A stretch of 64,000 bases of DNA from the NCBI RefSeq assembly GCF_902459465.1, contig NC_047075.1:11222001-11286000 (forward strand). The letters are read 5' to 3'. The position numbers were made by a program, and so were the translations under genes. Below, piece after piece: positions 2,739 to 49,000 of the stretch (position 1 is its first letter; each line of letters begins with the position of its first letter). The stretch is from Asterias rubens. Lineage: Eukaryota. Under the pieces are notes generated by a model. The model was not told where the DNA came from. It saw only the letters and a list, made by a program, of their open reading frames with translations, and made no database searches.

Positions 2739-3574
2739 ATGAAATTGAATGCATTAAGAGCTTACAATAAACCCTAGTTCGAGGGGATTATAAGAAAATG
2801 CATGAATTTGAATGCAAGTTAATTATATTTAATTATTTTGTTTTGCTGAAATTGGCCAGGAAAACCAATGTTTAAGTTATTGTTTTATTTGGTGCTAAAA
2901 GGTCTACCTTCATTATTGTTGTATTGGTTTTTTACAAAGCATTATTAAGTTAATGCATTCATTACTGTTGTATTCTTTAATGTCTTGTCCCGTTTTTATA
3001 TACATCAGGAACAGCTAAACTTTATTGTAATGAATGTTTTTTTATTGCGAAGTAATTTCATTCAAATTTAATGTTTTTGTTGTTTGCATTTTTCAAGTCA
3101 AAATGCTGGTTGATTTTTCGTCTGACAATGAACGTTTTATCTTATGACATCTGTCTACTGCTTTTTTTGGCAGCAAACCTATTTTGCAAAATGGTGGAAA
3201 ACTCAATTGAGACAACATGGTTTTGTAGCTGCACTATATCAAATATTTTCTTTGCCAATACTGTATTGTTTTAGCGCCACGCCATTCTGACAAAATGGTA
3301 TATAAAACTGCTTGGGGCCAATACTGGTTTCGAAGCGGCACACCATTTTGGCAAATAATGGCAAGACATAGTACCTTCTCTGGGCCAATACTGATTTTGT
3401 AACGGGGCACCATTGGGCCGGCATTGAACCGATGTCGGTTGTGAACTTAAAAAAGAAAACCAAAACTGAAAAGGAGCAAAAAAGGGATAATTTGTATTTA
3501 ATTATTGTTTTGTTTTTATGCCCAAAACCAAAAAAAATAACCCCAAAATGGTAATTATTATTTGACGAGCCTTT

Positions 3575-3910
3575 GTTATAAATATTATAATTTTGGGGGC
3601 TAATCGTCCTTACTCGCTCGCAGCTAAGAGCTGAATTGCGAAGGACGCGGCTACAACGTGTTCGAGAAAAAGGCATGCAAGGGCGCATTCAGCTGCCAGC
3701 CACATCAACCCATTATGACCACGGAGCACAGCCAAGATCGAAAGTGTTTGATGTTTTCCTGAGGGAGGAAAACCGGATAGTCTGGAAAACCCTCGTGGCA
3801 CAGCAGAGAACCAACGCACAACTCAACTAACATATGGCCCCGACCGGGAATCGAACCGGGGTCACCTTGGTGAGAGGCGAGCGCTTTACGCACAAGCCAA
3901 CCGTGCCACC
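3575..3910 (-). mobile_element. tRNA-derived SINE
   Basis: Minus-strand tRNA-like head with B-box GGTTCGATTCCC, conserved core (ggttttcc..ccggttttcctccc) and AT-rich tail. Confidence 0.8.
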
Positions 3911-4080
3911 CAAAATATTGATTGTACTGTTGTAACAATTAGGAGTAACTGATAATCAATATCAGAGCCATGCGTACAAATTCAACGGAAGTTGAACTAC
4001 ATATTATTATATTACTCGGTGCTTGTTATACAACATATTAGGCTGTATGCTGTTTGTATTGTGTGTTTTACTAAGTAGTA

Positions 4081-5196
4081 AACTGCGCCAATAAAGTATC
4101 TAAACACTTACAAATGGTCAGATTCATTGGAACCTGAAATAGTATACAAACAATTAATTGTTCAGTTCTATTCACCGTTAATTTCTGCACATTTTGACAC
4201 ATCTTGTGTTGCGCTACGATGTTGTTTGGTGGATTTATGGACACTTGAGTGGCTTAAGGTCAAATTTCAAAAGTTGCAAAAGCCCCTATTCACCCCAATT
4301 CCAGAAGGGAACTCACATAAGCATCACACTCGGACAAAATCAAGACAAAAGACACAAACTCGTTTCGTTTATATGACCATGAAATTAATTGCCGTATATT
4401 GAACTTTAAAACTGCTGATATCCTGTCCCCCATTCTTGGTGTGTCCTCCATCACACTGTCCTGAACGCCAAGGAGTCGTCTTCTCATACTCTCAATGAGA
4501 CCTCTGATCTTTCCCTGGTCAATCCCCTGCCATTTACCGATCAGGATGCGTCGCAATCCCTCAAGAGTGGTGTCAGGCTTGATGGACTTGTTCACTTTCT
4601 TCTGCTGCAGAAGTCACCCTCGGACGGCCACTCCTTGGCAGGTTGCCACATTTCCCTGAGCTTGGTAGCGATTCCACCATTTACTGACCGTCTCTGGTGA
4701 CGTTGTTACCTGATGAGCTGCAGCTTGCATCAACGTAACGTCTTCTGTCAAACCAACGATCCGTCCTCTTTCATGTTTGGTCATTTGAGCCATCTTATCT
4801 TGAAACACCTTTCCTTGCTTACCATTGTTGAATGCCTCCCATCTTTTACCCCTTTGCTTGGTTACTGACAACTATTGCTGATGTTCATCGCAACTGATTT
4901 ATCCAACACGCGACCAAAAAAAATCATTTATAAAAGGCGGGCAAAAGAAACGCCGATCTTACTCGTCACAATAACGATTTAGCTCGAATAGGGGCTTTTG
5001 CAACTTTTGAAATTCGACCTTAAGCCACTCAAGTGCCCGTAAATCCACCAAACAACATCGTAGCGCAACACAAGATGTGTCAAAATGTGCAGAAATTAAC
5101 GGTGACTCGAAATGAATAATTATTTTGTGGCATACTATTTCAGGTTCCGATATATCTGACCATTTGTAAGTGTTTAGATACTTTATTGGCGCAGTT
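4081..5196 (-). mobile_element. Tc1-like internal-deletion derivative, 211-bp TIRs, TA TSD
   Basis: TIRs at 4081-4291 and 4986-5196; N-terminal HTH remnant (4614-4800) joined to C-terminal remnant (4400-4595); DDE core absent. Confidence 0.9.
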
Positions 5197-6348
5197 TATA
5201 ATCACATGCTTAAGGGTGCATTTTTTAGTTAAATATTTAATTTATTAAACGTAGTGTTAACACACTGAACAATCTGGCCAGTAAATCCAGAAGTGCCAGC
5301 ATCACCATGAACGTTATTGGGCCTGTGCTGGGTGAGTTATGGCAACTAATACTGTGCAAAAACATCTTTTGGCAAGCCTTCAACAGCTGTGACATTATCT
5401 GGTCAGTAGCTGACTAATTCTAAGGTTATTAGTGCCATGCTATAGATGCCCAAAACAGAAGTGCCAACATCGGCGCGAGCGTTGTTTTGCCTGTGCAAAG
5501 AGCACTTGGCCAACCTTCTGCCAGCAGTGGGCCATATCTAGCCAGATAACGGGCCAATAGCGACATACTGAAATAAAAAAAGCGTCACCATCGGCATGAA
5601 CGTTATTGGGCCTGTACGTGGTGAGTTTACGGCAACTGTACTGGGCCGATTAATTGTTTTATTTGGTGCTAAAAGGTCTACCTTCATTATTGTTGTATTG
5701 GTTTTTTACAAAGCATTATTAAGTTAATGCATTCATTACTGTTGTATTCTTTAATGTCTTGTCCCGTTTTTATATACATCAGGAACAGCTAAACTTTATT
5801 GTAATGAATGTTTTTTTATTGCGAAGTAATTTCATTCAAATTTAATGTTTTTGTTGTTTGCATTTTTCAAGTCAAAATGCTGGTTGATTTTTCGTCTGAC
5901 AATGAACGTTTTATCTTATGACATCTGTCTACTGCTTTTTTTGGCAGCAAACCTATGTTGCAAAATGGTGGAAAACTCAATTGAGACAACATGGTTTTGT
6001 AGCTGCACTATATCAAATATTTTCTTTGCCAATACTGTATTGTTTTAGCGCCACGCCATTCTGACAAAATGGTATATAAAACTGCTTGGGGCCAATACTG
6101 GTTTCGAAGCGGCACACCATTTTGGCAAATAATGGCAAGACATAGTACCTTCTCTGGGCCAATACTGATTTTGTAACGGGGCACCATTGGGCCGGCATTG
6201 AACCGATGTCGGTTGTGAACTTAAAAAAGAAAACCAAAACTGAAAAGGACCAAAAAGGGGATAATTTGTATTTAATTATTGTTTTGTTTTTATGCCCAAA
6301 ACCAAAAAAAATAACCCCAAAATGGTAATTATTATTTGACGAGCCTTT

Positions 6349-6684
6349 GTTATAAATATTATAATTTTGGGGGCTAATCGTCCTTACTCGCTCGCAGCTA
6401 AGAGCTGAATTGCGAAGGACGCGGCTACAACGTGTTCGAGAAAAAGGCATGCAAGGGCGCATTCAGCTGCCAGCCACATCAACCCATTATGACCACGGAG
6501 CACAGCCAAGATCGAAAGTGTTTGATGTTTTCCTGAGGGAGGAAAACCGGATAGTCTGGAAAACCCTCGTGGCACAGCAGAGAACCAACGCACAACTCAA
6601 CTAACATATGGCCCCGACCGGGAATCGAACCGGGGTCACCTTGGTGAGAGGCGAGCGCTTTACGCACAAGCCAACCGTGCCACC
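6349..6684 (-). mobile_element. tRNA-derived SINE (duplicate of 3575-3910)
   Basis: Lies inside the tandem duplication. Confidence 0.8.
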
Positions 6685-6854
6685 CAAAATATTGATTGTA
6701 CTGTTGTAACAATTAGGAGTAACTGATAATCAATATCAGAGCCATGCGTACAAATTCAACGGAAGTTGAACTACATATTATTATATTACTCGGTGCTTGT
6801 TATACAACATATTAGGCTGTATGCTGTTTGTATTGTGTGTTTTACTAAGTAGTA

Positions 6855-7970
6855 AACTGCGCCAATAAAGTATCTAAACACTTACAAATGGTCAGATTCA
6901 TTGGAACCTGAAATAGTATACAAACAATTAATTGTTCAGTTCTATTCACCGTTAATTTCTGCACATTTTGACACATCTTGTGTTGCGCTACGATGTTGTT
7001 TGGTGGATTTATGGACACTTGAGTGGCTTAAGGTCAAATTTCAAAAGTTGCAAAAGCCCCTATTCACCCCAATTCCAGAAGGGAACTCACATAAGCATCA
7101 CACTCGGACAAAATCAAAACAAAAGACACAAACTCGTTTCGTTTATATGACCATGAAATTAATTGCCGTATATTGAACTTTAAAACTGCTGATATCCTGT
7201 CCCCCATTCTTGGTGTGTCCTCCATCACACTGTCCTGAACGCCAAGGAGTCGTCTTCTCATACTCTCAATGAGACCTCTGATCTTTCCCTGGTCAATCCC
7301 CTGCCATTTACCGATCAGGATGCGTCGCAATCCCTCAAGAGTGGTGTCAGGCTTGATGGACTTGTTCACTTTCTTCTGCTGCAGAAGTCACCCTCGGACG
7401 GCCACTCCTTGGCAGGTTGCCACATTTCCCTGAGCTTGGTAGCGATTCCACCATTTACTGACCGTCTCTGGTGACGTTGTTACCTGATGAGCTGCAGCTT
7501 GCATCAACGTAACGTCTTCTGTCAAACCAACGATCCGTCCTCTTTCATGTTTGGTCATTTGAGCCATCTTATCTTGAAACACCTTTCCTTGCTTACCATT
7601 GTTGAATGCCTCCCATCTTTGACCCCTTTGCTTGGTTACTGACAACTATTGCTGATGTTCATCGCAACTGATTTATCCAACACGCGACCAAAAAAAATCA
7701 TTTATAAAAGGCGGGCAAAAGAAACGCCGATCTTACTCGTCACAATAACGATTTAGCTCGAATAGGGGCTTTTGCAACTTTTGAAATTCGACCTTAAGCC
7801 ACTCAAGTGCCCGTAAATCCACCAAACAACATCGTAGCGCAACACAAGATGTGTCAAAATGTGCAGAAATTAACGGTGACTCGAAATGAATAATTATTTT
7901 GTGGCATACTATTTCAGGTTCCGATATATCTGACCATTTGTAAGTGTTTAGATACTTTATTGGCGCAGTT
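6855..7970 (-). mobile_element. Tc1-like deletion derivative (duplicate of 4081-5196)
   Basis: Same TIRs and TA flanks at +2774. Confidence 0.9.
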
Positions 7971-8528
7971 TATAATCACATGCTTAAGGGTGCATTTTTT
8001 AGTTAAATATTTAATTTATTAAACGTAGTGTTAACACACTGAACAATCTGGCCAGTAAATCCAGAAGTGCCAGCATCACCATGAACGTTATTGGGCCTGT
8101 GCTGGGTGAGTTATGGCAACTAATACTGTGCAAAAACATCTTTTGGCAAGCCTTCAACAGCTGTGACATTATCTGGTCAGTAGCTGACTAATTCTAAGGT
8201 TATTAGTGCCATGCTATAGATGCCCAAAACAGAAGTGCCAACATCGGCGCGAGCGTTGTTTTGCCTGTGCAAAGAGCACTTGGCCAACCTTCTGCCAGCA
8301 GTGGGCCATATCTAGCCAGATAACGGGCCAATAGCGACATACTGAAATAAAAAAAGTGTCACCATCGGCATGAACGTTATTGGGCCTGTACGTGGTGAGT
8401 TTACGGCAACTGTACTGGGCCGATTAATTGTCAATGTGCAAATGCAAATGGCAGTATTTGTCCTAAACATATGTTTGCTGGACGACTCTTTGGGGATGGA
8501 GATTAGCTTTGGATAATCGTGACCCCAT

Positions 8529-15664: not shown

Positions 15665-16165
15665 TATTTTCATGCTGCATTTCTTCTGGGGAGTATCGTC
15701 GACCTGCCAAATCAATACATTTTAAATCGGAAATGTATTACTGTGGATAGTGTCTACCGTTCAAATAAGCAAAATGGCAGAAACCGAACCACTATGCACC
15801 TTCATTAGATTGGGCACAGTCGTTATGTTGTTATCATCATTATCTTTCGTTGAAAATGTTTTGCCATTACGATATGACGTTGCTGCACCTGCTGTGCTCT
15901 TATCATCATACGAACCAACATAGTTAGTGTACATGTCTCCTGTAATAGCAAACTCACCAAAAGAAGCCCAAGCTGTGTTGGACTGCCAATCTTCTATTTT
16001 CTACTCTGAGCTCCCTTTTACCCGATCCAGTAAGTTCACGCAGAATGTCTTTCCCCAAACAGAACTCATTCTGCAGATCACCAAACCCGGTTTGGTATTC
16101 GGCCCAGGTACGGTAAAAGTCAACAAAGCCATATTGTCTCCTCTGGATCACGGTCCAGTCTCCTT
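15665..16165 (-). pseudogene. Intronless FReD pseudogene
   Basis: GDWTVIQRRQ..EYQTGFGDLQNEFCLGKDILRELTG..(frameshift)..STAG..YRNGKTFSTKDNDD..DCAQSNEGA*WF..CHFAYLNG..KKCSMKI. Confidence 0.92.
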
Positions 16166-17430: not shown

Positions 17431-17565
17431 TTAGCCACGACGTGGAGATTGGCGGCGTATTTTGATTTCAGTCTTTGCAATACGAGACCCATTCCATTCA
17501 CTAGCTCTAATAACTCGTTTGTATGAACCCATAGTATCACCAGGTCGGATATATTCAGCATTAAG
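17431..17565 (-). pseudogene. Stranded 3' half of a paralogous FReD last exon (LNAEYIRPGDTMGSYKRVIRASEWNGSRIAKTEIKIRRQSPRRG*)
   Basis: Closely matches the end of exon 32169-32452; homology stops abruptly at 17565. Confidence 0.9.
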
Positions 17566-20107
17566 GGTACTGGGCCGAATAAATAAAAACTAGCAGTTAC
17601 TTATCCTAATGGCAAAAAGATGTTACGTTTTCGAGACTCTTGCAGTAAATTACAAGAAACGTGGTTTAAATTCAGTTCAAAAGATACATAAGCTTGATAT
17701 TATAATGAAGAGTTATCGTATTCTTGTTGAATGATGCAATAAGATAACAAACTAATTCAGGTCCGGAAGTGGTGAGTCATTAAGGAACAATGGGTGCCAC
17801 TCGTTAACTGGTACTGGCAATTTTCATGGTGATTGCATTTGTATAGGATTGACCGAAATTAGTTTATGATGGCTTTTTACCTGGAATTAAATGAACGAAG
17901 CGATTAATTCCAAAGTCATTAGTCTTGACAGTATCACGCTATGGCACAATTTTATACTGAAGTTCACTCCAGTGAACCCTAGAGTAAACCTTACACACGA
18001 TAGCTGGCATGGTACCGTTTGGTCTTATTTCGCACATTGGCTTCTCACATAATATTAACTCCTTTTTTTATATATATTCGCCGCTTGCTGCTTTTTTTCA
18101 AACGTTCTCACTGTGGTTTCGGGGAGGGTACACACATCATCGTTCCCAATATGTGAGTCACTCCCAATTACCGTCTTGGAAAATTGTACCGAGATGTGCA
18201 CACATGAATTGGACCTGCCAGGGAGTGGGGGGGGGGGGGGGGGGCACGGAAAAAGGCGCCATCAACGTTGATACTCGTCTCATTTACGAGCATGCATTAC
18301 ATGCACGCAGTCATTCATGCAGGTCGCATCACACGTACGTTTGGAGGTGAAGTTTAGTTTGTGCGCGTGCTCGATCTGTACAGACACGGTTTGTCACCCT
18401 GACTGCTAGGTGTACCATACCAACACGCACAAACTCCGGACGCCGACTGATCCACACGAGAAACCGATAACTGAAGTTAGCTTTTAATTCGAACGGTACA
18501 TTTTGAAAATCATAAAAATCGATTGGGTAGAATGTTTTTTTTTTTTCACATTGTTAGAAAACTATATGTTTAAACAAGAATTTGAAAAATCTAAAGCGTA
18601 GAATGGTTAAATTTCTCACCTTCGTCGCGTTTGTGACACTGTTTTAAGGACGTCGTACCAAGCAATACTTTACCATGCCTGGCCATGCGCCTGATGTCGG
18701 AGGGACGAATGCATTTTCAAAATAGTCTTGTCTAAATATTTGTCCACTCCAAACACCTGACAAATACACTATACATATAGAATTGGTAAAATGCTGCCTT
18801 ACTTTTTTGTAATGGTACGTTCACACAGCAACTGGGAAATAATTGCGCTACCTACGACCGTTGCATGATTGTATCGCACTGCGACTGTTGCATGCACGGC
18901 AGGATGTGGGTATTGGAGATGCGTGGCACTTGTAATAGCAGACAATACCATAAGCGACTTGTCATCAAGTCCTCTCGTCCTTGAATATAACCACTATAGT
19001 CTACATATTGGTAGGGGGCCAGTCTAGTTCACACTTAAACTGATCCTATGTCTTTACCTGCGAGGATGAAGACATGTACTGGTTTTACAGAACCAGTGAT
19101 ATCATTGGATACCATGTATGGCTGTACGTACATACACATCATTTCAATGTTGTTTTATATGCATACCTGTACGTATAATTTAAATTCGAAATGAATGCCA
19201 GATCCACAGTACATATATACCATGTGACTGTCAGGATTTTAACGCAGGCTCATTGGCAAACTCTGGCGTAATTGACGAGCCTGGAAGTATGACGTGTTGC
19301 TGGCTACTATAGTGCTTACTCCATCATGCTCCGAATACCTTCATGGTTTGATTCTACTTCTGACCCCCCACCCCTACATAGTTTGGCGAAAAGATCAACA
19401 CTTTTCGTGACTCTTGCAGTAAATTATGAAACCTAAGGCTGGATATTCACGTACCTGTGCCCCACATTGTTCTACGCGCAAGCGCCCCAAACGGCCACAA
19501 ATGGCCACAACTTATTTTTTTTTTCGTTTTCACGAACAGCCACTTTGTGTATTGCTCTAAAACGCATGGAAATTTCCCTTGCACAGCAACAAAAAGTAGG
19601 ACGTCCGGCTTTTGCGTGTTCACGAACAGCAACACGACGCGCTGCACACAGACCACGTTTTGTACAGTTTTCATGAAGAGGCACTTTTGTTTATTGAATA
19701 ATTACTAATTAATTAAACCATTACGGACAAAATTGGAAACAGATTTGTACGATTTAGGATCTCTACTTTCCTGATATGTAAAAATGTCAAAGATTAAACA
19801 TCGAAAAGTCTACGAACCAGTGATTTCAAAATTAGCTTAACTTCAAACGCGATTTTCTCCAAACACATTTTTGGCTGCATGGGACATTATGTTTGTCCCT
19901 TCGTGAAGACGGTAACGATTTGGTAGATGACAAATGAACACTTAAAAGTGTGGTCCAATGAACAATTTAAGGCAATAAAGAAGTGCTACTTGTAAGACTA
20001 GCATTTTTGTGTCTTTTTTTTTTATTGATGTCCTCTTTCTACAACAATACATAACAATAGTTCGACATTTTACCAGTAGAGCTGAAAGTAATTTATTTAA
20101 TCCCCTT

Positions 20108-32168: not shown

Positions 32169-32452
32169 TTAGCCACGAGGTGGAGAGTAACGGCGTATTT
32201 TGATTTCAGTCTTTGCAACACGAGACCCATTCCATTCACTAGCTCTAATGACTCGTTTGTATGGACCCATAGCATCACCAGGTTGTATATATTCAGCATT
32301 AAGGTTATTATCTACACCAGGTATACCAGAGCATCTATTAAACCACCATCCTCCTTCACTGTTCAGACCTGGGCAGTTTGTTGAGCCTTGGTTAATATCT
32401 TTGTGATGGCGAATGCTGAAGGCTTGATTGTTGGCAGTCTCAAGAATATTAT
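32169..32452 (-). CDS. FReD gene exon 9 (C-terminal part of the fibrinogen domain, stop)
   Basis: Acceptor ttttcag|AT; NCP..SEGGWWFNRC..NLNAEY..KTEIKIR. Confidence 0.92.
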
Positions 32453-33002
32453 CTGAAAAAACAGAGGAAAGTCTGATAATCAACATTCTTAAATACCTAA
32501 GACAGTTTGGCTATTCCTATTGGTGGAGAGCATTTCACGTGGAGTGTTTAAACAGCTGATAAAGGCACAGCTAGAGCTGTATATAACAAGTTGTTTTCGG
32601 ATAGTATTTGTGCGGGTTAGCCAAATGCTATCAGAAAACTGCCTCCAAAAAAATGCACCGCACGGTCACGACACTGCCGATTTTAAACGGCCGTTTAAGA
32701 ACTCGTCACCACTCATGTATACCCTTACTAATATTTGATGCTCATTAATTTAAAAGTTAAGTGGTTTTTTTTTCTATTAAATAACTGCACGCCTGTTATA
32801 GAATATCAGAAAATTAAAAAGTGTGAACAATTAACACGCGTCTATGGCACCACCATACACTGTTTTAAACTTGTAAACAATTTAAAGGTTTGTTTCACAC
32901 ATGTTTTTAGATCGTCTGTTTGTATGTTGTATTGCAAACAAGTAAACACCATTATCGGTTGGACTCGAAAGTTAGTAATTTAACTAAACTCGAAGAACTT
33001 AC

Positions 33003-33141
33003 TTCTGCATCCAATGAGTTCAATGCTGACAGGTTGATATTCGAAGTTTTCAGTTCGTATGATACGGATGAAGCGTGCTCGGATCGGCTGCTTCAAAATG
33101 GTGGTTAGCGGTGCGGATTCCTCCGTGTTACCATGGAATGT
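33003..33141 (-). CDS. FReD gene exon 8 (C-terminal part of discoidin module 2)
   Basis: cag|TFHGNT..QPIRARFIRI..IELIGCR|GTAAGT; 139 nt, phase 0 to 1; not in the ORF track. Confidence 0.9.
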
Positions 33142-33202
33142 CTGTAGCACAGGAGATAAACAGCATGATTACGGCCAACTTTGGTTAATTGAATAAATCG
33201 CC

Positions 33203-33543
33203 TTAAAGGCAGTGAACAAAATTGGTCATTGTCATAGATTAGCCTTCACAGTTAGTGTAACTCAACATATGCATAAAACAACAAACCTGAGAAAATTCGA
33301 GCTCAATCGGTCATCAAAGTTGCGAGATAATAATGAAAGAAGAAAACACCCTTGTCACACGAAGTTGTGTGCGTTTAGATGGTTGATTTCGTGGAAAATT
33401 ACTTCTTTCTCCAAAACTATGGCACTTCAGAGGGAGCCGTTTCTCACAATGTTTTATACCACCAACCTCTCCACATTACTTGTCACAAAGAAAGGTGTTA
33501 TGCTAATAATTATTTTGAGTATTTACCAATAGTGTCCACTGCA
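33203..33543. mobile_element. TTAA MITE family A in intron 7
   Basis: TTAA-AGGCAGTGAAC ... CCAATAGTGTCCACTGC. Confidence 0.8.
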
Positions 33544-33727
33544 TAGAAAGTAATAAAACATGAAAAGCTCATTATTGCAATGTTCCATGTACGTATGTTT
33601 TTTCTGGATTAAAGATTGTCTCTGTTTAAAACCAGTTGAGAAACAAGTCCACCAGAATCAAAATATTAATTTGAAGAACCATTTTACGTAAAGTACGTAA
33701 ACGTTGAGCAATGACACAACCATTTAC

Positions 33728-33933
33728 CTGACGTTCAGGTGCTCCATGGTGGGTTACGTTGACCCAGGTAACGTTGTCGAGACTGACATGTACTTGAAAT
33801 GACTGTGCATATTTCCCTTTAGCTATGACTCCCTCAACTAGAGTTACTAACAGTAGGTCAATCTGAAGCCGTGGTGATTCGCCAGGCATTGTATGGGCTT
33901 CCTTAAGAAGGCGTTGTGCACATACCCAGCGTA
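33728..33933 (-). CDS. FReD gene exon 7 (N-truncated discoidin module 2)
   Basis: tttacag|..LQIDL..VEGVIAKG..SFQVHVSLDNVTW..Q|GTAAAT; phase 1 to 0. Confidence 0.8.
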
Positions 33934-34258
33934 CTGTAAACAAAACATGTGACTGATTGAAAATTTGAATTGAATGCGTTGTGCTCCTGTTCTGTAAAGT
34001 TATGAGTAAATTTAGATTTTCTTAAAAAAAGGTTTATATTTAAAAAAAGAACAGTAAATGGCATCAATTAAGACATCGACTCTATAACAGGCACAGGGTC
34101 AACATTTACACAAAAATAAATCAGTTTTTAGAAAAGGAATTTTAACTGGAACAGTACTTAACTGGCATCTAAACTATGAGAGCAACTGGATTATTAATAG
34201 GCCCATTATAGAACAAATACAGCACTGGCAACCTTTAAAATTACCAACAACTTTGAGT

Positions 34259-34342
34259 AAGTATTCCGGAACTTCTGTTAAGTATTCGGGAACTTCTGTA
34301 AAGTATTCGGGAACTTCTGTAAAGTACTCGGGAACTTCTGTA
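34259..34342. repeat. Minisatellite, 4 x 21 bp (AAGTATTCGGGAACTTCTGTA)
   Basis: Direct tandem repeats; explains the KYSGTSV repeat ORF. Confidence 0.95.
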
Positions 34343-35034
34343 TTAAACAACGGTTTAACTGGTAAATTACAAACTTTTCCCCGAGCAGGACATGTAACTT
34401 ATAAACAAGCCTCAAACTTCTACCAATGTTCAATCTTTCGAGATAACGAAATTAGAAAAGTCCTACTCACTTTTATACTGCACGTACGGGGCTGGAATTA
34501 ACGGATTGATGGATGAATAATAATTTGTGATTTTAGGTGATTTTCGTGGAATTAATGGAAAACTTTGATAAAGAACATGGCGATTTATAAAGTAATTGGA
34601 ATCATGTGAAACTGGGTTGTCAATAGAGGGCGCTATAGAGGATGCATTACTACGCTCACTAATAAGAATCCGACTACTGTCTTATAATAATGCACCACAC
34701 TTACATAGGAAAGGACGTCGGAAAACCGGAAAAAGGGTTTTTACAGAGTTTCCAACTCTATTACGTCTTTGTACCAATATACTTTATTACGTGTTTTTAC
34801 CAATACCGCATGAGAGTCAAAGAGTATTGACTCGTTCTGAAGCGGCCGTTTAAAACCTTGTATGGTCGTGGCCGTACGATAAAGGCTCTCACCTTCGGCT
34901 CGGGCCTATATCGCGCGGTCACGACCCTGTCGGTTTTAAACGGCCGATTAATAACTCGTCGCTGCCCTTTTATTCCCTTTTTAAAAGTATAGTTTTTGCA
35001 AATCCAAAATTATGTCAATAGTTCTTACATATAA

Positions 35035-35180
35035 GAGATGTTTAGTCTAGTTGGTAAGATACTGCTCTAAAACTACAAGGGTCGTGGGTTCGAATTCCAC
35101 TCGAGAAACATGCCTGTGATACTTTTTTCACAAGACTCGGGAAAGTACAGTTCTAACACACATCGGTGTATGGGTAAAAA
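35035..35180 (+). mobile_element. tRNA-derived SINE
   Basis: TAGTCTAGTTGG A-box, GGTTCGAATTCC B-box; gactcgggaaagtac segment also at ~14920. Confidence 0.7.
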
Positions 35181-35388
35181 ATAAAATAATATTACTAACA
35201 TGATTATCAACAATCCAGATGAAATTATTTAATGAAATGGACTGTTTGTATTTTTGCAATGTGCTTGATTGATAATATGCACTCGTTTAAGTTTAAGATC
35301 AGAGAAAGAGACTTGTATATGAATTCAGTTTACGATTTTGTTAAATAAACGTTACATTTGAAAACGTTGTGATTTATTGAAACAATAC

Positions 35389-35527
35389 CTCTGCATCCAA
35401 TGAGTTCAATACGTAGGGATGGGTTATTAGACCATTTTGTTGGTTTGATGCGGATGTACCGTGCTTGAATAGGCTGCTGGAATATATTGGTGACTGGGGT
35501 GTATCCATCAGTGTTGCCGCTGAATGT
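35389..35527 (-). CDS. FReD gene exon 6 (C-terminal part of discoidin module 1)
   Basis: cag|TFSGNTDG..QARYIRIKPTKWSNNPSLRIELIGCR|GTATTG; 139 nt. Confidence 0.92.
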
Positions 35528-35677
35528 CTGTTAAATAATAAACCACATGTGGAGCAGTAACAAAAACAAATGGTAATTTAAACTTTGGGCCTGAATAATG
35601 GCTGTACTGCATTATTGAAGTGTTGTTTTTTAGGAATACATGTCAGGTTGGAGGGTTTATTTCCTGAGTACTCTTAC

Positions 35678-35985
35678 CTGTGGAGTAGAGGCCCCATTCA
35701 CATACATCCATGTAGTGAGTTCGATGCTGTATTGTACTTGGTAGTGTGTCACATACTGGCCTGGCCCGCCCTGTGTGATGACACCCTCAATCTGGACAGG
35801 ATTTGCACCCATATCTACTTGAAGCCACGAACCATAGAGTCGTCCCCAAGCTGGGGACCAATAACGGTCCAGGTTCAGTCGTGCATTACTCGGCGGATAC
35901 AGGTCACCCCATTTACTAGATGCTGTGATCCTATCATCGGGGATACTCCCGTCTTCCATCCCAAGTTTATGTCTACAATATACAA
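35678..35985 (-). CDS. FReD gene exon 5 (F5/8 type C/discoidin module 1)
   Basis: C..KLGMEDGSIPDDRITASS..ARLN..WLQVDMG..VITQG..YVTHYQVQYS; ttccag| acceptor, |GTAAGA donor. Confidence 0.92.
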
Positions 35986-36849
35986 CTGGAACCAAAATAT
36001 AACAAATTAAGCGATTAATTGGTGGAGTAACTATTAATGAAATAACACTAGGTTTGACATCAATGTTTGCCAGGAGGTAAATTCAACGGATGAATTTATT
36101 TTTGTCACATTTATTGCTAAATGACGGTTCTGAAACGTGTCCTTTTTAAGCAACAAAGTAACACACCCGTCAAAAAATCGCCTGTGGTAGTTTCGGTTTG
36201 TTCTTGTATTCAGGATTATATTTGTATTTATTTCACTTCTTGTTAATAAAGACAAAATACAACAATACACATTAATTATGATTAGGTTAATAACTTTTAA
36301 AAAATACAGCAAAGAGCAATTTAAATACAATAAACACAAATAAAATAAAATGTCTTTATACAAATATAAAAATATGTATGTAGTCTATATAGCGTTAGTA
36401 AAAACAAACAAGGGCATACAAGCAAGGTAAACACATAAATTATAAAACCTAAATATAAAATGAAAGCACAACAATATATAGACGATGTGACCTCTGATGT
36501 CACTCGAAAACCATAACCTGATTCCGCGCATACCAGCGGGCAAAACCTTTGTGTTTTGGCAGTCAGCTAGAAAGTGTACGCAATCTTACCATGACTACGC
36601 GTCTTTTTTGCCGGTTAAACATAACGTAAACAGTCTTTTGTCAACAGAGGGCGGTTTGAATGTAAACATAGGTCACATCGTATTATAGATAATACACATT
36701 GGCTAAACAAAGTCATGTTATGGGTGGTTTCGTGTAAAGAACTCAACGTATAGTATTTATACACCTTACTGGGGAAGTCCCTAAGCACAAGTTTTGAACA
36801 TCGGTGGAAAGTCTATCCAAAAATATTTTGAAAAAAGGTACTTAAGAGA

Positions 36850-37560
36850 GTTCGTTCTAGCAAGTCTGTGTTTGAAAACCAGTTTATCAATTGTACGTGT
36901 AATAGGTTTCGGTATAATATGAGTAGGTGTCGTTCAAGCTGACAAAAAAAAAAACATAATAGCAGAAAACGGTTGTACAAGGAGGGTAAGTGAAGTTGAG
37001 TGAGATTGTTCGTAAGTAAGGGACTCAGCAACTCTATAATGTGAAACAGGAGCGAATGAATTGTCATTGCACTGCTTCAAGGGACTGTATGTGGTGTTTC
37101 TGGTTTGGTAGCCATACATGAATACATGACGCGCTGTTTGCGCACAGAAATAAATTACTGTTCACTGAAAGAAACCATGTCGTGATCCAAAAATAATGTT
37201 GGAACTTTTAGAATGCACAATAAAATGACTAGACATAAAACGTTAAAACATCTTGCATGACCCTGAACAATAAGATATTGGACGGTAATTAGCAATATGA
37301 GAGTTATTACCTTGTTGGGGGAAGAGGAATGACATTTGCCAGCCTCCAATCTCCAGGTACTCTGCCCAATTGGATGTTGAGGTTAATAATTTTGGTAAGT
37401 ATGCCAACCAGAGACAAATCAGCAAGCAAGTATGCCATGTGAATTTTCATCTGGATGAGTTTGGATGAGTTAAGCTTACGCACCGCCTACAACACCTCAC
37501 CTTGCCTGATTTGTATAGTTTGAAGAGGGCATGGGTGCCTGGGAGATTAGAGGCTGAATC
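36850..37560 (-). mobile_element. Degenerate LINE fragments
   Basis: NYRPIS..SCKMF motif (~37250-37330) and YQTRN-type LINE 3' region. Confidence 0.55.
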
Positions 37561-38036
37561 CTGTACAGAAAAATTACTACAAAAACAAATCATTAAAAGC
37601 ATTAACAATGGAAGACGATGCGTTACATGCGTCTCATCCTGAAAACATATACAGCAGGTTAAGACTTTCTTTCAGCATTAACAAACGACCAAAAACGTTT
37701 AGGGTTACATTTCAAGTCATTGGCAACAGCTTTAAACAAATACATTTCAAGTCATTGGCAACAGCTTTAATTGAACATTTACAGCAGGTTGAGACTTCCT
37801 GCTAGCATTAACTAAACCATCAAAACCTAAACGTTTAGGGTTACATTTCAAGCCATTGGCAACAGCTTTAAACATTTGTAGATAGTTAAACTTGATTACT
37901 AAAGTTTGTCTTTAGTCAACAAATTATTGTTGTATAATAATTATATTATATGATCATATTAAATGTATGCCTTATTGTATCTGAATATAAATATAAACAG
38001 GGGAGGCCTGGTCAATACAATGCCATGTGTACATAC

Positions 38037-38298
38037 CAGATAGTTGTATCTCTGAGTTCTCCAGAAACAGTTTGTAATGGCCTGGTCCGACGTGGAACTG
38101 TTTCTTGAGAAAAGAACCCTTGGTGTTATCTTCATTAGTGAGTTCCAGACGGATTGTCCAGTTCCCCTCAGCATCAGTCAGTTTATGTAGAATCTCATTG
38201 CCAAGCCAGAACTCACCATCCATTGACCCAAAGCCATCCTTGTAATCTTCCCAACTGCGGTTGAAATTGATTGATCCATCATAACGCCGCTGGACCAC
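38037..38298 (-). CDS. FReD gene exon 4 (central fibrinogen domain)
   Basis: [37 protein letters not shown]; phase 0 to 1. Confidence 0.95.
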
Positions 38299-39098: not shown

Positions 39099-39217
39099 AA
39101 TCCAGCCAGTATGCTTCCTCATATCACAAAACACCTCCGTTCCTTCACCTTTTTGGAAGGGATGGATAGTGTACACACCATCCTCTGTGTAACCGGCATC
39201 CAACAAGGCCTGACAGT
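39099..39217 (-). CDS. FReD gene exon 3 (start of fibrinogen domain)
   Basis: DCQALLDAGYTEDGVYTI..VFCDM..GWI|GTAAGT. Confidence 0.95.
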
Positions 39218-39819: not shown

Positions 39820-40071
39820 CATGGAAATGGCATCCATAATGGTCATGTATCTCTTCTTGGTCATCAGTGAAGATTACTTGATCAGTGTAGATTGGTTTAG
39901 TCTTTCTTTTTGGAGCTACTTTAAACAGCCCTCCCGGTCGGATTGAGGTACATGAACACATATCCTTAAATGGTTGGATCCACCGTAGTCGGTTTCCTTC
40001 ATCTGGATCAGGTTCTTGGGTCAAGTAGCAAACTTTGGTAGAAGCTGCTTCATTGCCTTGCAGCAAATAAA
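39820..40071 (-). CDS. FReD gene exon 2 (end of signal peptide plus Cys-containing linker)
   Basis: ttgttttag| acceptor, |GTAAGT donor, 252 nt, phase 1 to 1, open frame. Confidence 0.85.
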
Positions 40072-40615: not shown

Positions 40616-41049
40616 TAAAGCATGTAAGGCCCTGTCACACCTTGACCTTAAGCCAGCGTATGCCGACGAATGAACATTTTGGCGAATACGCTGGTGTACG
40701 TCGAATAAGTTATGGGTAGTGGGTAGAATAAGTTAAGACCACGATGAAACACGCTGATACGTGGTTGTAAGGCGAGGTCGTCGAGAAAGTGTGTGCGTGC
40801 ATAAACATTCTCGACGTATGCCAGCGTGTGGCTCATAAGTTCCGCAGAAGTAGTAGTTAAGTTTACTATATAATCGTAGACACACGTTCACACACATTCT
40901 TGTAAGTTGATAATAATTCGACATACGCCGAGATAATGCCAAGCGTACAGAGTATTTATTTATAACCTATGAGTAACGTGCTTCGAATCTATGTCGAAAG
41001 TATTTCCATACCATACCATACAGGTCGTATAGAAGTTCCAGATCCTATG

Positions 41050-42300
41050 AAGCGAATCTCACAGTGGAAGTATAATATATGAAGGGGTACAAATGTCTGA
41101 CAGCCTGATCGATTGGTCAAGTGAAAAATACATTTTTTTGTTAAACCATGACATCTCAAGGTAACTTTAGACCAGAATATACACATCGCTCATCCTCACA
41201 CTAGCAACAACGAGCTGAATATTGGACTCTAGAAAAGGCCATCAAACAAAAACTGGCTTCTCTATAAGATGGATGCATTTATCCAAAAATGAAATTAATT
41301 ATTTGTTATTTGCGAACTTGGTCGGTTTGGGCATTTCATCAGAATGGCAGCCTTCTAAAAAGATCTCATCATACCTCGTCAAAGAGAACGCCATCCATTG
41401 CGCTGGGAGGACAAAGCCCAAGAGAATGTCAAAATTCAAGAGGACAATTTAAGAACAGCGGTCAGCAGTCTTCGTTATATTTTGGTAATTATTAAAAAGA
41501 ATTCAAAGGAGGTGAAGCTGCATTTCGGGATTGCCTTGTACTCCCATTATGAACTTTAGAATAGGTGTGACTTAATATATCTTTGTGCGAGAAACTAGAT
41601 GAGTTGCTGAGTTTTGCATTCGTTGGAGGGGAGCAATTCTGGATTGAGGAAGGTTGATGTAGAGACGGTTGCAATAATCGAGGTGAGATGTAGCGAAAGC
41701 ATGAACCAGTCATTCAGTGGTACCTTGATCCAAGTAGCGTCTAAGCTTTCCGATCATGTGAATTCCAAAAGCAGCGGAACGACATGTTTGATTTATTGTT
41801 GCAGGGTTAATTGGTGACCAAAGGTGACTCCAAGATCTCTAACCGTCTTTGATGGGGTGATCTTGTCTTGGACAACTGAGTTGTGTGCAATAGGTTGTGC
41901 TGTTCGGAACTGTGAGGTGACATGTAGTACTTCAGTCTTAGATGAGTTTAGCTGCAGTCCGTTAAAGCTTGACCATGTCTGAATATCAGCAACACAGTCT
42001 GATAGCTGCTCCGTGGACTCAGTGTGCTTACTCTGATTGAGTATGACGTAATAAAGCTATGTGTCGTCAGCGTACTGCGTGGTGAATATATTGATGTTCC
42101 AGTGCCAGTCTAGGGCCAGTGTAAAGGATGAAGTCCAGCGGTCCCATGGCCGATCCTTGTGGTACTCCAGACGATAGGGGAGATGGTCTTGAAAAGGAGT
42201 CATTCACATTTACAACTTGAGTCCATCCATCAAAATACGAGCTGAGTAGCTGGAAAGCAAGACCATCTATGCCATATGAACGCTTGAGCCTCTCCAAGGC
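41050..42300 (-). mobile_element. L2/CR1-group LINE remnant
   Basis: GVPQGSAMGPLDFILYT, YADDT-like motif, LQRMQNSA..VTPILK; many stops. Confidence 0.85.
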
Positions 42301-42429
42301 AACTGTTTTGGTTCATAGTGTTAGCGGGACCAGCGTTCAGTGTTGACTATCTTGTGCTAGGAGCTAGTTCGAAGCCACATAAGTGCTACTAACTTTGTGA
42401 TGACAAACGCTCAACTTAACAGTGGATCG

Positions 42430-42760
42430 AGGCAGACTTTGTGCTCAGGTGCATCAGGTTCATAAGCCCGACCGTGACGTTCTGCGTTTCCTGTGGTGAA
42501 CCGATCATGACATAAGTGGGGTTCCTAAGATGTTTCGTAGGACATCTCACTTGTTTGGAGGCATTTGGTTCCAAAGCTTTGAAACATTTCCTTTAAAGCG
42601 TACAAAACAATACAACGTGGAGGATGTTGACGCCAATACCATATACACCATAGACAACGATTTATACGTCGATGATTGCCTGAAGTCGGTCGCCTCAGAG
42701 CACGAAGCCTTCAGACTAGTCAGACAACTTCGTGAGGTTTTTGCGTCCGGTGGATTTCGG
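42430..42760 (+). mobile_element. BEL/Pao LTR-retrotransposon RT fragment
   Basis: DRDVLRFLW, HLFGG, LYVDDCLKSV..L..GGFR. Confidence 0.85.
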
Positions 42761-43779
42761 TCACGTGACGCGTATCCGCGACTATCGTATATTGCAGACA
42801 CGTTAGCAACGGATACGGGAGCTCATGCACGTCGTAGAAAAACGGATACTGTTTTGCAGACTTTTAGTTGTATTTTTGTCCAAGATCAAAAACATTTCCC
42901 ATGGAATTGCTTTCACTGGTATCGTGCTTGCTATAGATGGAAAATTGCTAGTCATTTGCAAGCAAAACGATGAGAACATGCACTGTATAAAACACGGGGT
43001 CTATATCGGTCATTTTTGTCAGAAAAAACACACTCTTAACACCCATGATGAATGCGAGCGCACTCAAGTGAATACCTATTAGTCCAGGCATTTCCTGCAA
43101 AACAATGAGTTAACCTCAGACAAATTGCAACATAAAGTCTGTAAACTGATTCATACCCAGAATAACATATCAAAACTCTTAAGCAATCCGAGTGGGGGAA
43201 AGTGTCATGGCGGCCATTTTTCGAAATGGCCGCCATAAACCCGATATTTCCCAATATCACCGCTTCTGTAATGACTTAGGGCTTTAATTTTAAGTGGTAA
43301 AAAAAAATTTTCACTGACAAGGAATCAAATGAAACGCATTTCGTATCGCTAAACCTGGTCAAAAAGCAAAAATTACCGCCAATTTCTCAAAATTACCACC
43401 AGTTTCCAAAATGGCCGCCATAAAACAGATGTTTCCCAAAATCTCCGCTTCTAAATGACTTAGGGCTTTAATTTTAAGTGCTAAACATACATTTTCTGCG
43501 GCCAAGAATCCAATGACACACGTTACAATAAGGTAAACCTGACAAAAAAAAGCACAACGATGACAGCCATTTTTCCAAAATGGCCGCAATAAAACAGACA
43601 TTTTCCTATTCTTTCCGCTTCTAAATAGGCCTAACATTGAGATTCAATTATAAGTGCTTTTGTGAGGATCCCTTCTTCTGCTTTCTAAATGAAGTGTTGT
43701 TTTAATGATGTTATTCTTCAGTTTGATTTTTCTCAATGATATTAAATGTTGCTCCCACACTGGCTGAGGTACGTTGTGC

Positions 43780-44990
43780 TATCAGGAAGCTTTTAGAACG
43801 GACCTGCTGCAGGACCTGATGGCATTCCTCACGAACTGCTCAAGTGTGCCGATAGCCCGATAAGCAAAGCCCTTCACAAACTCTTCCTCAAAGTATGGTT
43901 CCCAGGAAGGGTTCCTTCCGATTGGAGGAATGGTGTCATCATCTCCATATACTAAGGGAAAGGTCAGAAAAACCAACGCAGCAGCTACAGGCGTATTACT
44001 CTTCTCTCAGTTCATGGAGAGGTGTTCGGTCATGTGCTCATGTCTCGCCTAGAAGCTGTACTCACCCGTCACCGCCGACCCCAGTAGTCTGGTTTCACAA
44101 GGGGCCGTTCAACAATGGATGGAGTGCTCGCCCTTCGACTCCTGTACCTACGTTGCTTATGTCGACATTAAGGCAGCTTTTGACTTTATAGATCGGGAAG
44201 CCCTATGGAAAGCCCTGAAAGCAACAGGAGTTCCACCGTTTCTTCTTCACCTGGTTCAGGACTTACATGATGGCAGCCTCTACCGTGCGTGTTGGCAACG
44301 ACATCTCCTGTCCCTTCCTTCAGCACCTCCGCGGTGTTCGCCGAGGCTGTGCCTGGCCCAAGCCCTATTTTGCTGTGCCATTGACTGGGTACTAAATCGC
44401 CGGCGGGCTGATCTCGGCATAATGGCTGGAGAAATGTCCTTTACCGACCTAGCCCACGCTGACGATGCCGCCCTGTTCGCAAGAGAGCCTAATAAGTGAC
44501 CTACCAAGCTCCATAAGTTCGAGGAAGGAAGCTGGGACAATGGCTTTACAAGATCAAGATGAGTGGTCCTATCAAGATCCAAAACTGCGCCGCCTTAAAC
44601 CACCTTCCGCCCCAGCGTCTGTACAGGGCCAGCCTGTCGAGACCACAGATAAGTTCAGATATCTCGACTGCGAAATATGTTCTGAAGGTCAGTCTTCTCC
44701 CGACATCCATCGACGACTCGAGCTTGCCTTTTCAACCTGTACACTTTTGGTTGAAGATGGACGTAGGCTTCAAGCATTTGACGCCAGATGCCAACAGTGG
44801 ATACTCGGTGTCCGTTGGTCAGGCTTAATCTCAAACGAGTCATTTTTGGAAACCACCGGTCTTGAGGACATTCCGTGTGACCATCTCACCGCGACGCCAC
44901 TCCCTCTTTCCTCCTTGGCCACGTCCGTCGGCTTCCAGAAGACACTCCAGCACACGCCGCCCCCAAGCTGAGCGTCAATGCTCGGTTGGG
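43780..44990 (+). mobile_element. RTE-clade LINE remnant nested inside the inverted-arm element
   Basis: YR.ITLLSV, YVDIKAAFD.IDREALW, DLAHADDAAL, VE..DKFRYL; frameshifted. Confidence 0.88.
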
Positions 44991-45029
44991 GGGGGGGGGT
45001 CCTCGGTCCTGGCCAAGCCTAGAAGAGAC

Positions 45030-45530
45030 CCAGAGGGCATCCACGCAACACCTGGTTGATGAACATGCTGCCCTCTACAAGAACCAGATGGAAGGTTCTA
45101 CAGAGGAGTTCTGCCAAGCTGATGTGTTATCCAGGATCGAGGAGCTCCTCAGGGCCAAACCAAATCATTTAAGTCATTTAGGACTGCCACGCACTAACTA
45201 CAGTATATGGATATGGTGGATATACTACGGAAGTTTGTCAGAGAAGAGCGCTTTGGCAACTGGGCGTTGCACATTGACGCTGTGTCAGAAATGCTGCGCT
45301 ATCTGGCAGCTTCTGGGCACAATCCCTACACCAAATCAGCCTACCTCTGTGTGCATCGGATGAGCAAGCTCAAGGACGAACGTCAAGATGTATACCTACG
45401 ATTTGAAGAAGGGTTATATCTTTTCAGAAGAAGTGATCGCCTTTGGACTGGTCTGTCCGTAGATCTCACTATCGAAAAGGTTCTGATGAGGGAAGACCAG
45501 CGGTGGCCTGATGAGAGGGCGAGGCATATG
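45030..45530 (+). pseudogene. Transposase fragment resembling Academ-type proteins
   Basis: YMDMVDILRKFVREERFGNWALH..GHNPYTKSA..RRSDRLWTGLSVDLTIEKVLMR; family assignment from recalled motif only. Confidence 0.6.
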
Positions 45531-46078: not shown

Positions 46079-49000
46079 AGTAGTGTGTAAGGCGTATATG
46101 ACCTCCTTTTTTTTAAGGTGGATCATGATCCACAGGTCGTGTGGATCATGGCTCGAGTGGGTCGTTGTAAGTAGATTGCCAAATGGGGGTGTGACGAAGA
46201 CCCCCCCTTTTTTTGTTTTTTACCAAGACAGTAAGTGGGAAGGTCAAAGTGTAAGACTCCATAGTTAATAATATGATACGCTGTTGAGTATTAGTCTAAT
46301 TTAAAGATCAGGTAGGAATTTGATTTGTTTGTGTATAGTGGAAATAACCCCCCCCCCCCCATATCGGTCAAGAATGTACGAGTCCGATAGTTCTGTTGTC
46401 GTCTGCTACGTTTTAATCATGTTCGAACTTGCTCTCAGTTGCCGGACCGGACAACAAAGACAACCGAGTGGAAGGCCCAATTATATGTACGTAGGGTATG
46501 TTTCTGTGGAGTAATACAAGTGCACCCATACAGGTTCGACTTATTTAAAGTTTTCTGGTGGTCGGTGTACACTTTGAAGACTACATCATTCGTCTTGGAT
46601 CGTCTCACTGATATTAACATGGAGTCGAAGCGTCTTGGACCCGTACAGGTAAAGGTCTCGTGTCCGATTTGTGGGAAGAGCTTTTCGCGTAGCGACAATA
46701 TGAAACGACACCGACAGACACACAAGCACCCCAGTATCGGAAGCCAATCGAAAGCTTGTCCCAGTTGTGATAAGGTGTTTTCCACTTCCTATAATTTGAA
46801 GAAACACCTTCAAAATCATAAGGAGAATGAGGAGGAGGAGGAGGAGGGGGACCTCCACGAAGATGCTAGTGGCGAATCCACAGAAGAGGAGGATTCTGAA
46901 GACGAGGACGTGGAGTGGGAGGAGCTTCATGTAGACGATGGTGATGAACCAACAGATGATGATGATGATGATTTTGAAAATGAAGACGTGATGGAGGAGG
47001 GGGACGACCGTGAACATGATGATAGTGATGGACTTACAGATGATGATGGCCTTGAAAATGAAGGAGATGAGGAGGAGGAGGAGGAGGAGGAGGCGTTTCT
47101 TGAAGACGATAGTGATGAATCAACAGATGATAACATTTATGAAAGCGAAGAAATTGAGGAGGAGGAGGAGGAGGAGGGATTATGTGAAGACGATAGTGAC
47201 GAATCAATGGAAGATGACTATTTTGAAGATGAAGAGGAGTCGGAGAAGGAAGATGACGATAGTGATTTATTAACAGACGACAGTGCTTATGAAAATGAAG
47301 AGGAGGACAGCGGGAGACGTCCAACGAAAATACTTAATTTTTCGATAAAGAATGCTAAACTTATTATGTTTAAATGATGATTTTTTTTTTTTTTTTTTTT
47401 TTTTTCTTTCAATCCTACACGCCCAAGATTGTATTGTTTGAATAATAATACAGAACAGTATTATCAACGGAGGTTTGTTAAAGCATAATATTCTATCAAC
47501 TGTAAATACTAAGAGGGCTTGAATAAGTGAACTCGTCACACATAAAAAGAAAAAAAAAAAAAAAAAAAAAAAACATGATGAGTAAAAACATATTAATTAA
47601 CTAAATAAATTAATAAACAAATAATAAAATAAATATACTGTTAATGTCTTTCCTTAAGTTTTCAAAATAGGCGGGCGCGGGTCGCTGGGGTCTAATCAAG
47701 CACCTGCATGCGAACGAAGTTCATTCGACAGATTTCAAAGTTCTTGTCATAAATGGGGGGGGGGGTCATCATGTACAATTAATTTAAGTATTGTGGCGGT
47801 TATAAGCAGATGTTAATGGAGTGTTATATACAGAATAAATGTGTTGTTGTTGTTTTTGGGGTCAAAAAGTGATAACCTTTGTGTTTGTTTTTGTGTATAC
47901 TTGTTTTCTCTGCAGTCCCTTTTGGCAAAGGTAAACAGACCCTGTCCGAGCGATGGTGGTACATGATGTGGGCATGGAGTTATAGAAAACAAAGATAGCT
48001 CCACGGTATGGGGGAACAAGAACTGACACGTTTGGCTGGTAGACCAATCAGTTGTGACGTCATATATTGACTACCAGATGGGTTACTGATCAAGGATCAT
48101 CGCGGGTTGTGTACATGAAGTGAAGGCCACGGGCAATAATGGTTACAGATTAGGATAATATTAGATTATATTGTCACACTTTACTCCATTACTATTAATT
48201 TAACGTTTAATCTTCACATAAAACGGGGGGGGGTATGACCATTTTCAGAAACCTAGGATATACGCGGCAATTTAATTAGTCCGTACAGAGCATAATATGG
48301 TACGTACACATAATTGGGTTTTCCGCTCAGGTATTTGTTGGCCGGTCCGACAATTAAGGGCAAGTTCGAACACTATAAAAAAAAAAAAAGTGGGGAAAAA
48401 GGGACAGCGTCTAAATGTAAAACAAACTAAGCATGTCACCTTTTTTTCTCGATGCCTAACTCGGTTGTACCCACACGTTGGGGCTCTTATTTATTAAAAT
48501 TAGTGTAGATCACTGGTGTTGTCGTCAAAAGTAAAATCGTTCGATGTATACAAACAAAAAACACGACCGTGTTTATATATCGTCGGTCTTTGGTTGTGAC
48601 GCTATATTGCGTTTCGTATGTTATACTTATTTATTAGATAGGCCTAAAGTTATAACAGTATTATTTATTTGACATTTTCAAATACAGTGTAATATATGTA
48701 TACAATATCTTAACCTAAACAAACCAAGGGTTATTTTTATTATAATTATAATTATTGGTTTATTAAAAATGTAAACATATGGATGTCAAAAAGCCGAATT
48801 GCGGATGCAACGATACAAAGAGTAAACAAAACCATTATTCGACTAATACATTTGATACTCAAATAATGGTTCGTGGTGGCGTTCCTACAGAATTGTTTTT
48901 CTTCTTATCTTTTTAGAAACAAAGGATATAATTAATGCAATGCACTTGTATTACTCCACAGAAACATACCCTACGTACATATAATTGGGCCTTCCACTCG

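Follow-up and report, generated by a model that had tools for sequence, protein, structure and literature searches.

Discoidin modules nested within a fibrinogen-related domain in a multigene family of starfish

A stretch of 64,000 nucleotides from the starfish Asterias rubens (NCBI RefSeq assembly GCF_902459465.1, contig NC_047075.1, positions 11,222,001 to 11,286,000, hereafter the window) raises the question of whether one protein domain can be encoded inside another. On the minus strand, between positions 38,298 and 32,169 of the window, four exons that encode discoidin (F5/8 type C) domains lie between two exons that encode parts of a fibrinogen-related domain (FReD). The initial annotation of this gene proposed that exon shuffling had placed a lectin module inside a FReD, and that the inserted exons might be skipped to yield two or three isoforms. 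Both domains are familiar, and one nested within the other is not a known layout. We find that the nested layout is real and conserved, and that it belongs to a gene family rather than to a single unusual locus. The window gene looks intact and is likely to belong to a multigene family that encodes secreted, lectin-like proteins in starfish, and its product would include all of the discoidin exons.

The window DNA was read directly to examine the gene. All six exons named at the outset, together with their phases and the open frame, were recovered exactly on re-reading the minus strand, with AG directly before and GT directly after every exon (Table 1). The joined frame is open down to a TAA stop codon at 32171-32169. 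The four discoidin exons comprise 792 nucleotides (264 residues) and form two modules of two exons each, D1 (447 nucleotides) and D2 (345 nucleotides), which begin and end in phase 1. As had been proposed, each module is phase-symmetric, and the frame remains open under full inclusion, on omission of all four exons, or on removal of either module. Exon 2 (252 nucleotides) and exons 3 and 4 taken jointly (381 nucleotides) are also phase 1-1 units, and thus the gene as a whole consists of phase-1 modules joined in series. Approximately 570 codons are open over eight exons, every splice site of which is canonical. The stretch from exon 4 to the stop codon would represent the 3' two thirds of the gene, with the full-inclusion form of about 580 amino acids as its expected product.

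Table 1. Exons of the window gene in 5' to 3' order, with positions given in window coordinates
Exon	Position	Strand	Length (nt)	Phase	Encoded part	Pfam profile positions
Putative exon 1	40867..40897	-	31		ATG, 10 codons and 1 nt; donor GTAAAC; first part of signal peptide; from a pattern scan	
Exon 2	39820..40071	-	252	1 to 1	Signal peptide end and Cys-containing N-terminal region	
Exon 3	39099..39217	-	119	1 to 0	FReD A subdomain (DCQALL...VFCDM)	Fibrinogen_C 4-46
Exon 4	38037..38298	-	262	0 to 1	FReD B subdomain, ending at the B/P boundary	Fibrinogen_C 46-126
D1 exon a	35678..35985	-	308	1 to 0	First two thirds of a complete discoidin; module type 1	F5_F8_type_C 2-82
D1 exon b	35389..35527	-	139	0 to 1	Last third of D1, ending ...IELIGCR	F5_F8_type_C 86-127
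D2 exon a	33728..33933	-	206	1 to 0	Internally deleted discoidin, first Cys kept	F5_F8_type_C 34-86
D2 exon b	33003..33141	-	139	0 to 1	C-terminal third of D2, ending ...IELIGCR	
Last exon	32169..32452	-	284	starts 1	FReD P subdomain and closing B strand; stop TAA	Fibrinogen_C 146-219

The 5' end of the gene is defined to different degrees by its first two exons. Exon 2 is 93% identical to the corresponding part of an annotated protein of A. amurensis (P0038) and 88% identical to that of P0149, and its acceptor site is conserved in the paralogous locus L030. Exon 1 is putative, and its 31 nucleotides would bring the total to the 580 amino acids originally proposed. No homologous stretch was found by DNA search in the paralogue loci, and a protein search with the A. 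amurensis N-terminus gave no match.

The Pfam profiles Fibrinogen_C (PF00147, with a cut-off of 22 bits) and F5_F8_type_C (PF00754) bear out the two domain identities, and the placement of the exons is far beyond chance. Exon 4 matches the former at 68.9 bits and exon 3 at 22.5 bits, while the last exon alone scores 21.2 bits, just under the cut-off. The full-length relatives P0039 and P0001 score 119-126 bits with the same profile. Both conserved disulfide pairs of the FReD are present in the window protein, one in exon 3 (DCQALL...VFCDM) and the other in the last exon (NCPGL...WWFNRC). The two exons of D1 score 53.9 and 38.6 bits with the discoidin profile, and the module spans YCRHK to IGCR with both terminal Cys residues, whereas the first exon of D2 scores 21.3 bits. 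On alignment, the P subdomain of the window gene reads FSIRHHKDIN in place of the canonical FReD motif FSTxDxDND, whose aspartates we take to be calcium ligands as in the fibrinogen gamma site. These aspartates are kept in the nested proteins of Patiria and of the gene cluster on contig C5 described below. Thus, the FReD of the window subfamily seems to have lost its calcium-site aspartates.

To what extent is this architecture shared? The whole assembly was searched with four exon peptides (D1 exon a, D2 exon a, exon 4 and the last exon). At least 22 loci in the genome show the nested order: downstream of a FReD exon 4, on the same strand and within 1.6-24 kb, come one to four discoidin modules and finally the family's last exon. 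Twelve of these are located on the contig that carries the window (C15), including the window gene and its tandem neighbour, and the others are found on C24 (two), C17 (one), C7 (one) and C5, where six genes form a compact cluster. Additional incomplete exon sets are present on C32, C45 and C5. All full-length copies of the last exon in complete loci have discoidin exons upstream. The exceptions are four copies for which no exon-4 partner was found, three of which still have upstream discoidin matches, and two short partial copies. Most other FReD genes of this genome are single long open frames that lack the insert-bearing intron. With one to four modules each and a mosaic of module types, the 22 loci constitute a large tandem family with variable recognition modules, as seen among FREP-like diversified lectins.

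The neighbour of the window gene, L035 (G000:C15:11290225-11299268, minus strand), is located just beyond the window and is a recent tandem duplicate, with exon 4 being 95% identical and D2 exon b 100% identical. Also on the minus strand, but within the window, the last FReD exon of the family recurs as an orphan of 46 codons (17434-17571; 83% identical). About 1.3 kb downstream of this orphan are parts of another FReD gene of canonical type (15764-16163, minus strand), which carry the motifs GDWTVIQRR and FSTKDNDDNN.

The initial annotation suggested a search for the same architecture in other echinoderms, and it is indeed present in A. amurensis and Patiria miniata. A protein search with the last exon covered 1.84 billion proteins, and the sole strong full-length matches were A. 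amurensis proteins of 553 and 841 amino acids. In these proteins, an N-terminal match to positions 3-116 of the FReD profile is followed by two to four discoidins, and the last-exon match is found at the extreme C-terminus. Nested RefSeq proteins from the three species include P0039, P0001, P0002, P0041, P0021 and the Patiria protein P0050. The A. amurensis protein P0039 (545 amino acids) has the layout of the window gene and shares 75% identity with the window model. Two A. rubens proteins, P0041 and P0146, have 591 and 603 amino acids, and P0021, also from A. rubens, has 417 amino acids and a single module and is encoded in the C5 cluster. P0050 (536 amino acids) comes from a species, Patiria miniata, that is placed in another order. 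These relatives are named 'lactadherin-like' (as is P0021), 'coagulation factor VIII-like' (as is P0039) or 'uncharacterized', and such names mask the FReD part of the proteins. No description of a discoidin nested in a FReD was found in the literature.

Two further models from other starfish deserve mention. In P0066 from Acanthaster planci, the N-terminal region typical of the family is joined straight to discoidins with no FReD in what may be a partial model, and one discoidin is truncated in a different manner. The Patiria miniata model P0159 (L042) retains an intron and fuses two FReD genes. It was set aside for this reason, and P0161 served as the FReD-only comparison gene in Patiria.

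How did the discoidin exons come to reside within the FReD? When FReD-only proteins are included in a multiple alignment, they align on both flanks of the insert, leaving a single clean gap just before GD(S/C)L. Exon ends and phases are identical in the window gene, the A. rubens C5 gene and Patiria P0050. In each, V(F/V)QRR marks the phase-0 start of the FReD exon, whose other end is in phase 1. The two discoidin exons have phases 1 to 0 and 0 to 1, the first of them stopping just short of (T/V)F.GN, and the last exon starts in phase 1. In the Patiria FReD-only gene P0161, this phase-1 intron recurs at ...GDA G|DSL... and is empty, which indicates that the cassette sits in a pre-existing intron. 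The proposal of exon shuffling into a phase-1 intron at the B/P boundary of the FReD is therefore strengthened by the site and phases shared among the C15, C5 and Patiria types and by the empty intron.

We also considered whether the insertion had occurred independently in Patiria, because the FReD of P0050 is 74-79% identical to those of Patiria FReD-only genes. However, the shared insertion site, phases and internal intron, and the membership of all of these modules in one clade, favour a single origin of the insert for Asterias and Patiria.

That clade comes from a maximum likelihood tree built on 50 discoidin domains, in which the starfish modules are all united (support 95/99) and the domains of brittle star, coral, mollusc, fluke, amphioxus and vertebrates lie outside. 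Four well-supported positional types of module are found within it, and D1 of the window gene belongs to type 1. The second module had been described as a discoidin like the first, but it is incomplete. Alignment reveals that D2 lacks about 52 of 158 domain positions just past the first Cys, while both terminal Cys residues are kept. It covers positions 53-156 of the 158-position family profile and thus is not a full-length discoidin. The second exon of D2 is 50% identical to that of D1. This deleted form is a stable feature, given that its first exon is open at every one of the 13 loci that have it and that the same form occurs in A. amurensis proteins. In the tree, the closest partner of D2 (99/95) is the last module of P0041 and P0147, which is full-length there, and D2 is therefore this last module after an internal deletion of about 52 positions.

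Modules and exons appear to have had separate histories among the paralogues. Relative to A. amurensis, the window gene is a mosaic: exon 2 (93%) and D2 (85%) are nearest to P0038, yet P0038 carries a type-3 module at the position where the window gene has type 1. The last exon is 85-97% identical to the last exons of paralogues. Its synonymous divergence is only 0.05-0.07, whereas other exons of these pairs (L029, L030, L036 and L038) reach 0.3-0.7. This difference suggests that gene conversion has been confined to the last FReD exon.

If the two halves of the FReD are to form one domain, the fold must be able to close around the insert. An AlphaFold2 model of the one-module relative P0021, made from a 57-row alignment, has a mean predicted local distance difference test (pLDDT) score of 81. 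Model residues 43-416 superpose on M-ficolin (2d39_B) with Z 25.7 and a root mean square deviation of 2.1 Å over 197 of 200 residues, and the FReD also superposes on those of L-ficolin, FIBCD1 and angiopoietin-2 (Z of about 25, about 200 residues). Residues 177-334 superpose on neuropilin b1 and factor VIII C2, again with Z of about 25. These superpositions indicate that the two FReD halves close around an intact discoidin, and thus the model shows a full FReD fold rebuilt around the insert in this relative.

In the model of the two-module protein P0039, which shares the layout of the window gene, the N-terminal half of the FReD, D1 and much of D2 are predicted well. The D1 region gives Z of about 23 against factor VIII C2 and neuropilin b1. 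Whenever this model is aligned to a single solved discoidin, the match covers residues of about 185-453, beginning at the first Cys of D1 and ending at the last Cys of D2. Such a span is probably a trivial end effect, and one alternative is an exchange of strands between D1 and the shortened D2.

Several observations weigh against the view that the window copy is a working gene of this family. Structure prediction, which had been proposed as a check and was carried out on relatives, gave two intact folds for P0021, but the P subdomain of P0039 is modelled weakly (pLDDT 45-63). In the latter case only the N-terminal half of the FReD matched FReD structures, and the matches listed were mostly discoidins. 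The protein of the window gene itself is absent among the matches of the protein searches. Of the A. rubens copies, the majority seem to be lacking from the protein set that was searched. There is no transcript support for the window copy from the runs examined, which were DNA or contained related contigs. Ratios of nonsynonymous to synonymous substitution (dN/dS) between paralogues are 0.2-0.9 for most exons, and some exceed 1. Between the window gene and L035 the ratio is 0.85 for D1 exon a and 2.9 for D2 exon a, and L035 has a TAA stop codon within its last exon. With such high ratios, and a stop in the neighbouring duplicate, the window copy could be drifting.

These data invite the explanation that the window copy, as part of a birth-and-death family, is silent or in decay, with exons that still look intact but no protein product. 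The putative status of exon 1 and the orphan last-exon fragment at 17434-17571 would fit such a history, as would the missing database protein and the condition of the neighbour. Against it, some 570 codons are open over eight exons with canonical splice sites throughout, and exon 2 and D2 are 85-93% identical to an annotated A. amurensis gene. We consider this explanation unlikely, and continue to favour an intact-looking gene whose product would include all of its modules.

The original proposal for this locus was that the discoidin exons are alternative cassettes, such that a FReD of 316 amino acids, one-module forms and the 580-amino-acid form would differ in specificity. Removal of either module or both (447, 345 or 792 nucleotides) indeed preserves the frame, but symmetry of phase is expected of any shuffled module and is by itself no sign of skipping. 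Skipping was also said to restore the Gly-Asp pair of the canonical FReD. This is wrong in detail, since the junction codon G|AT encodes Asp alone, and yet this Asp falls where FReD-only relatives have Asp. Four read runs yielded no splice junctions, but X3 and X10 are DNA and X1 and X2 contain only related contigs, so that this result is neutral on skipping. The contigs from X1 and X2 are about 92-95% alike on FReD exons, and one matches on D2, with depth that is mostly repeat-derived.

Among the annotated relatives in A. rubens and A. amurensis there are no module-dropping isoforms. The RefSeq isoforms P0146/P0041 and P0147/P0040/P0148 differ solely at the N-terminus or by 12 amino acids that result from an alternative donor inside a module. 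In addition, neither protein search revealed a FReD-only protein with the family's last exon, and at least one module is retained in all 22 complete loci. Two or three splice isoforms thus lack support, and skipping of the discoidin exons seems very improbable. As judged from the genes, the differences expected between isoforms exist instead between paralogues, which carry one to four modules.

Lastly, that the nesting is an artefact, either of an assembly join or of a discoidin gene residing in the intron of a FReD gene, is hardly credible and has nothing to recommend it beyond the lack of RNA for the window copy, because the same order recurs at 22 loci on six contigs (C15, C17, C24, C5, C7 and C32) and in two other species, contigs from the independent DNA run X10 show 0 or 1 mismatch across the intron/exon edge at 35960-36110, and the discoidin exons begin and end in phase 1 with no start codon, stop codon or signal peptide of their own.

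Other features of the window are located on both sides of this gene. A tandem duplication of about 2.77 kb (3056-5700 and 5830-8470) carries near-identical sets of open frames and is probably a repeated element. Open frames resembling reverse transcriptase are found at 41500-45400 (for example 42312-42070, minus strand). The motif SSGVPQGSAMGPLDFILYTGP found there also makes up the N-terminal portion of P0038, an A. amurensis RefSeq model that probably fuses a transposon exon to the gene. The element may be syntenic. Further along, at 46391-47374 on the plus strand, there is an open frame of 328 amino acids that combines C2H2 zinc fingers with a long acidic repeat.

Taken together, the data are consistent with a model in which the window gene and its relatives carry discoidin modules within the phase-1 intron at the B/P boundary of the FReD, each module being an exon pair with phase 1 at both ends. 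The two ends of a discoidin domain are tied together by a disulfide, and consequently the FReD can close around the insert. The window gene would contribute one complete type 1 module and the conserved, internally deleted last module of the family. Diversity would be generated in the genome rather than by splicing, through duplication, loss and exchange of modules between tandem paralogues that have one to four of them. The products, predicted to be secreted, would function in multivalent recognition of glycans or surfaces, probably in immunity. Perhaps a FReD without its calcium-site aspartates acts more as a scaffold for the discoidin modules.

A broader and more tentative proposal, which as a whole we regard as possible but doubtful, is that the family constitutes a combinatorial repertoire. 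Four ancient module types would be mixed, lost and exchanged in some 20 or more tandem genes whose last exon is homogenised by gene conversion, with one subfamily being devoid of the calcium-dependent site. The conserved partial last discoidin may need a neighbouring domain to fold, and occasional skipping at the RNA level could add further forms. Whatever the fate of this proposal, the family illustrates unusually cleanly how exon shuffling inserts one domain into another, with the empty intron, the filled intron and the multiplied cassette all still visible in present-day genes. The lectin-like family is, moreover, unstudied and fast-evolving, and it occurs in sea stars, animals of interest for wasting disease and for invertebrate immunity.

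Several known systems combine some of these features. The amphioxus 'ryncolin-1-like' proteins P0071 and P0055 and the coral protein P0079 resemble the starfish proteins in having both Pfam families in one secreted protein. However, their discoidins precede an unbroken FReD (Fibrinogen_C 2-221) in the usual tandem layout, whereas those of starfish are nested. Lactadherin (MFG-E8), EDIL3, the C1-C2 domains of factor V/VIII and the b1-b2 domains of neuropilin share the discoidin domain, of which D1 of the window gene is a complete example. In these proteins the discoidins are arranged end to end after EGF, A or CUB domains rather than inside another domain, and the starfish modules form a clade of their own apart from the vertebrate discoidins. 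Ficolins, tachylectin-5, FIBCD1, FGL1 and angiopoietins have the same FReD fold, but theirs is continuous while that of the window gene is split between B and P by 264 discoidin residues. Snail FREPs, which combine immunoglobulin superfamily (IgSF) domains with a FReD, and other expanded invertebrate FReD families are likewise large, tandem and fast-evolving, with variable added recognition modules, a likeness at the level of the genes. In the FREPs the IgSF partner is N-terminal to the FReD, whereas in the starfish family the partner is a discoidin and resides within it.

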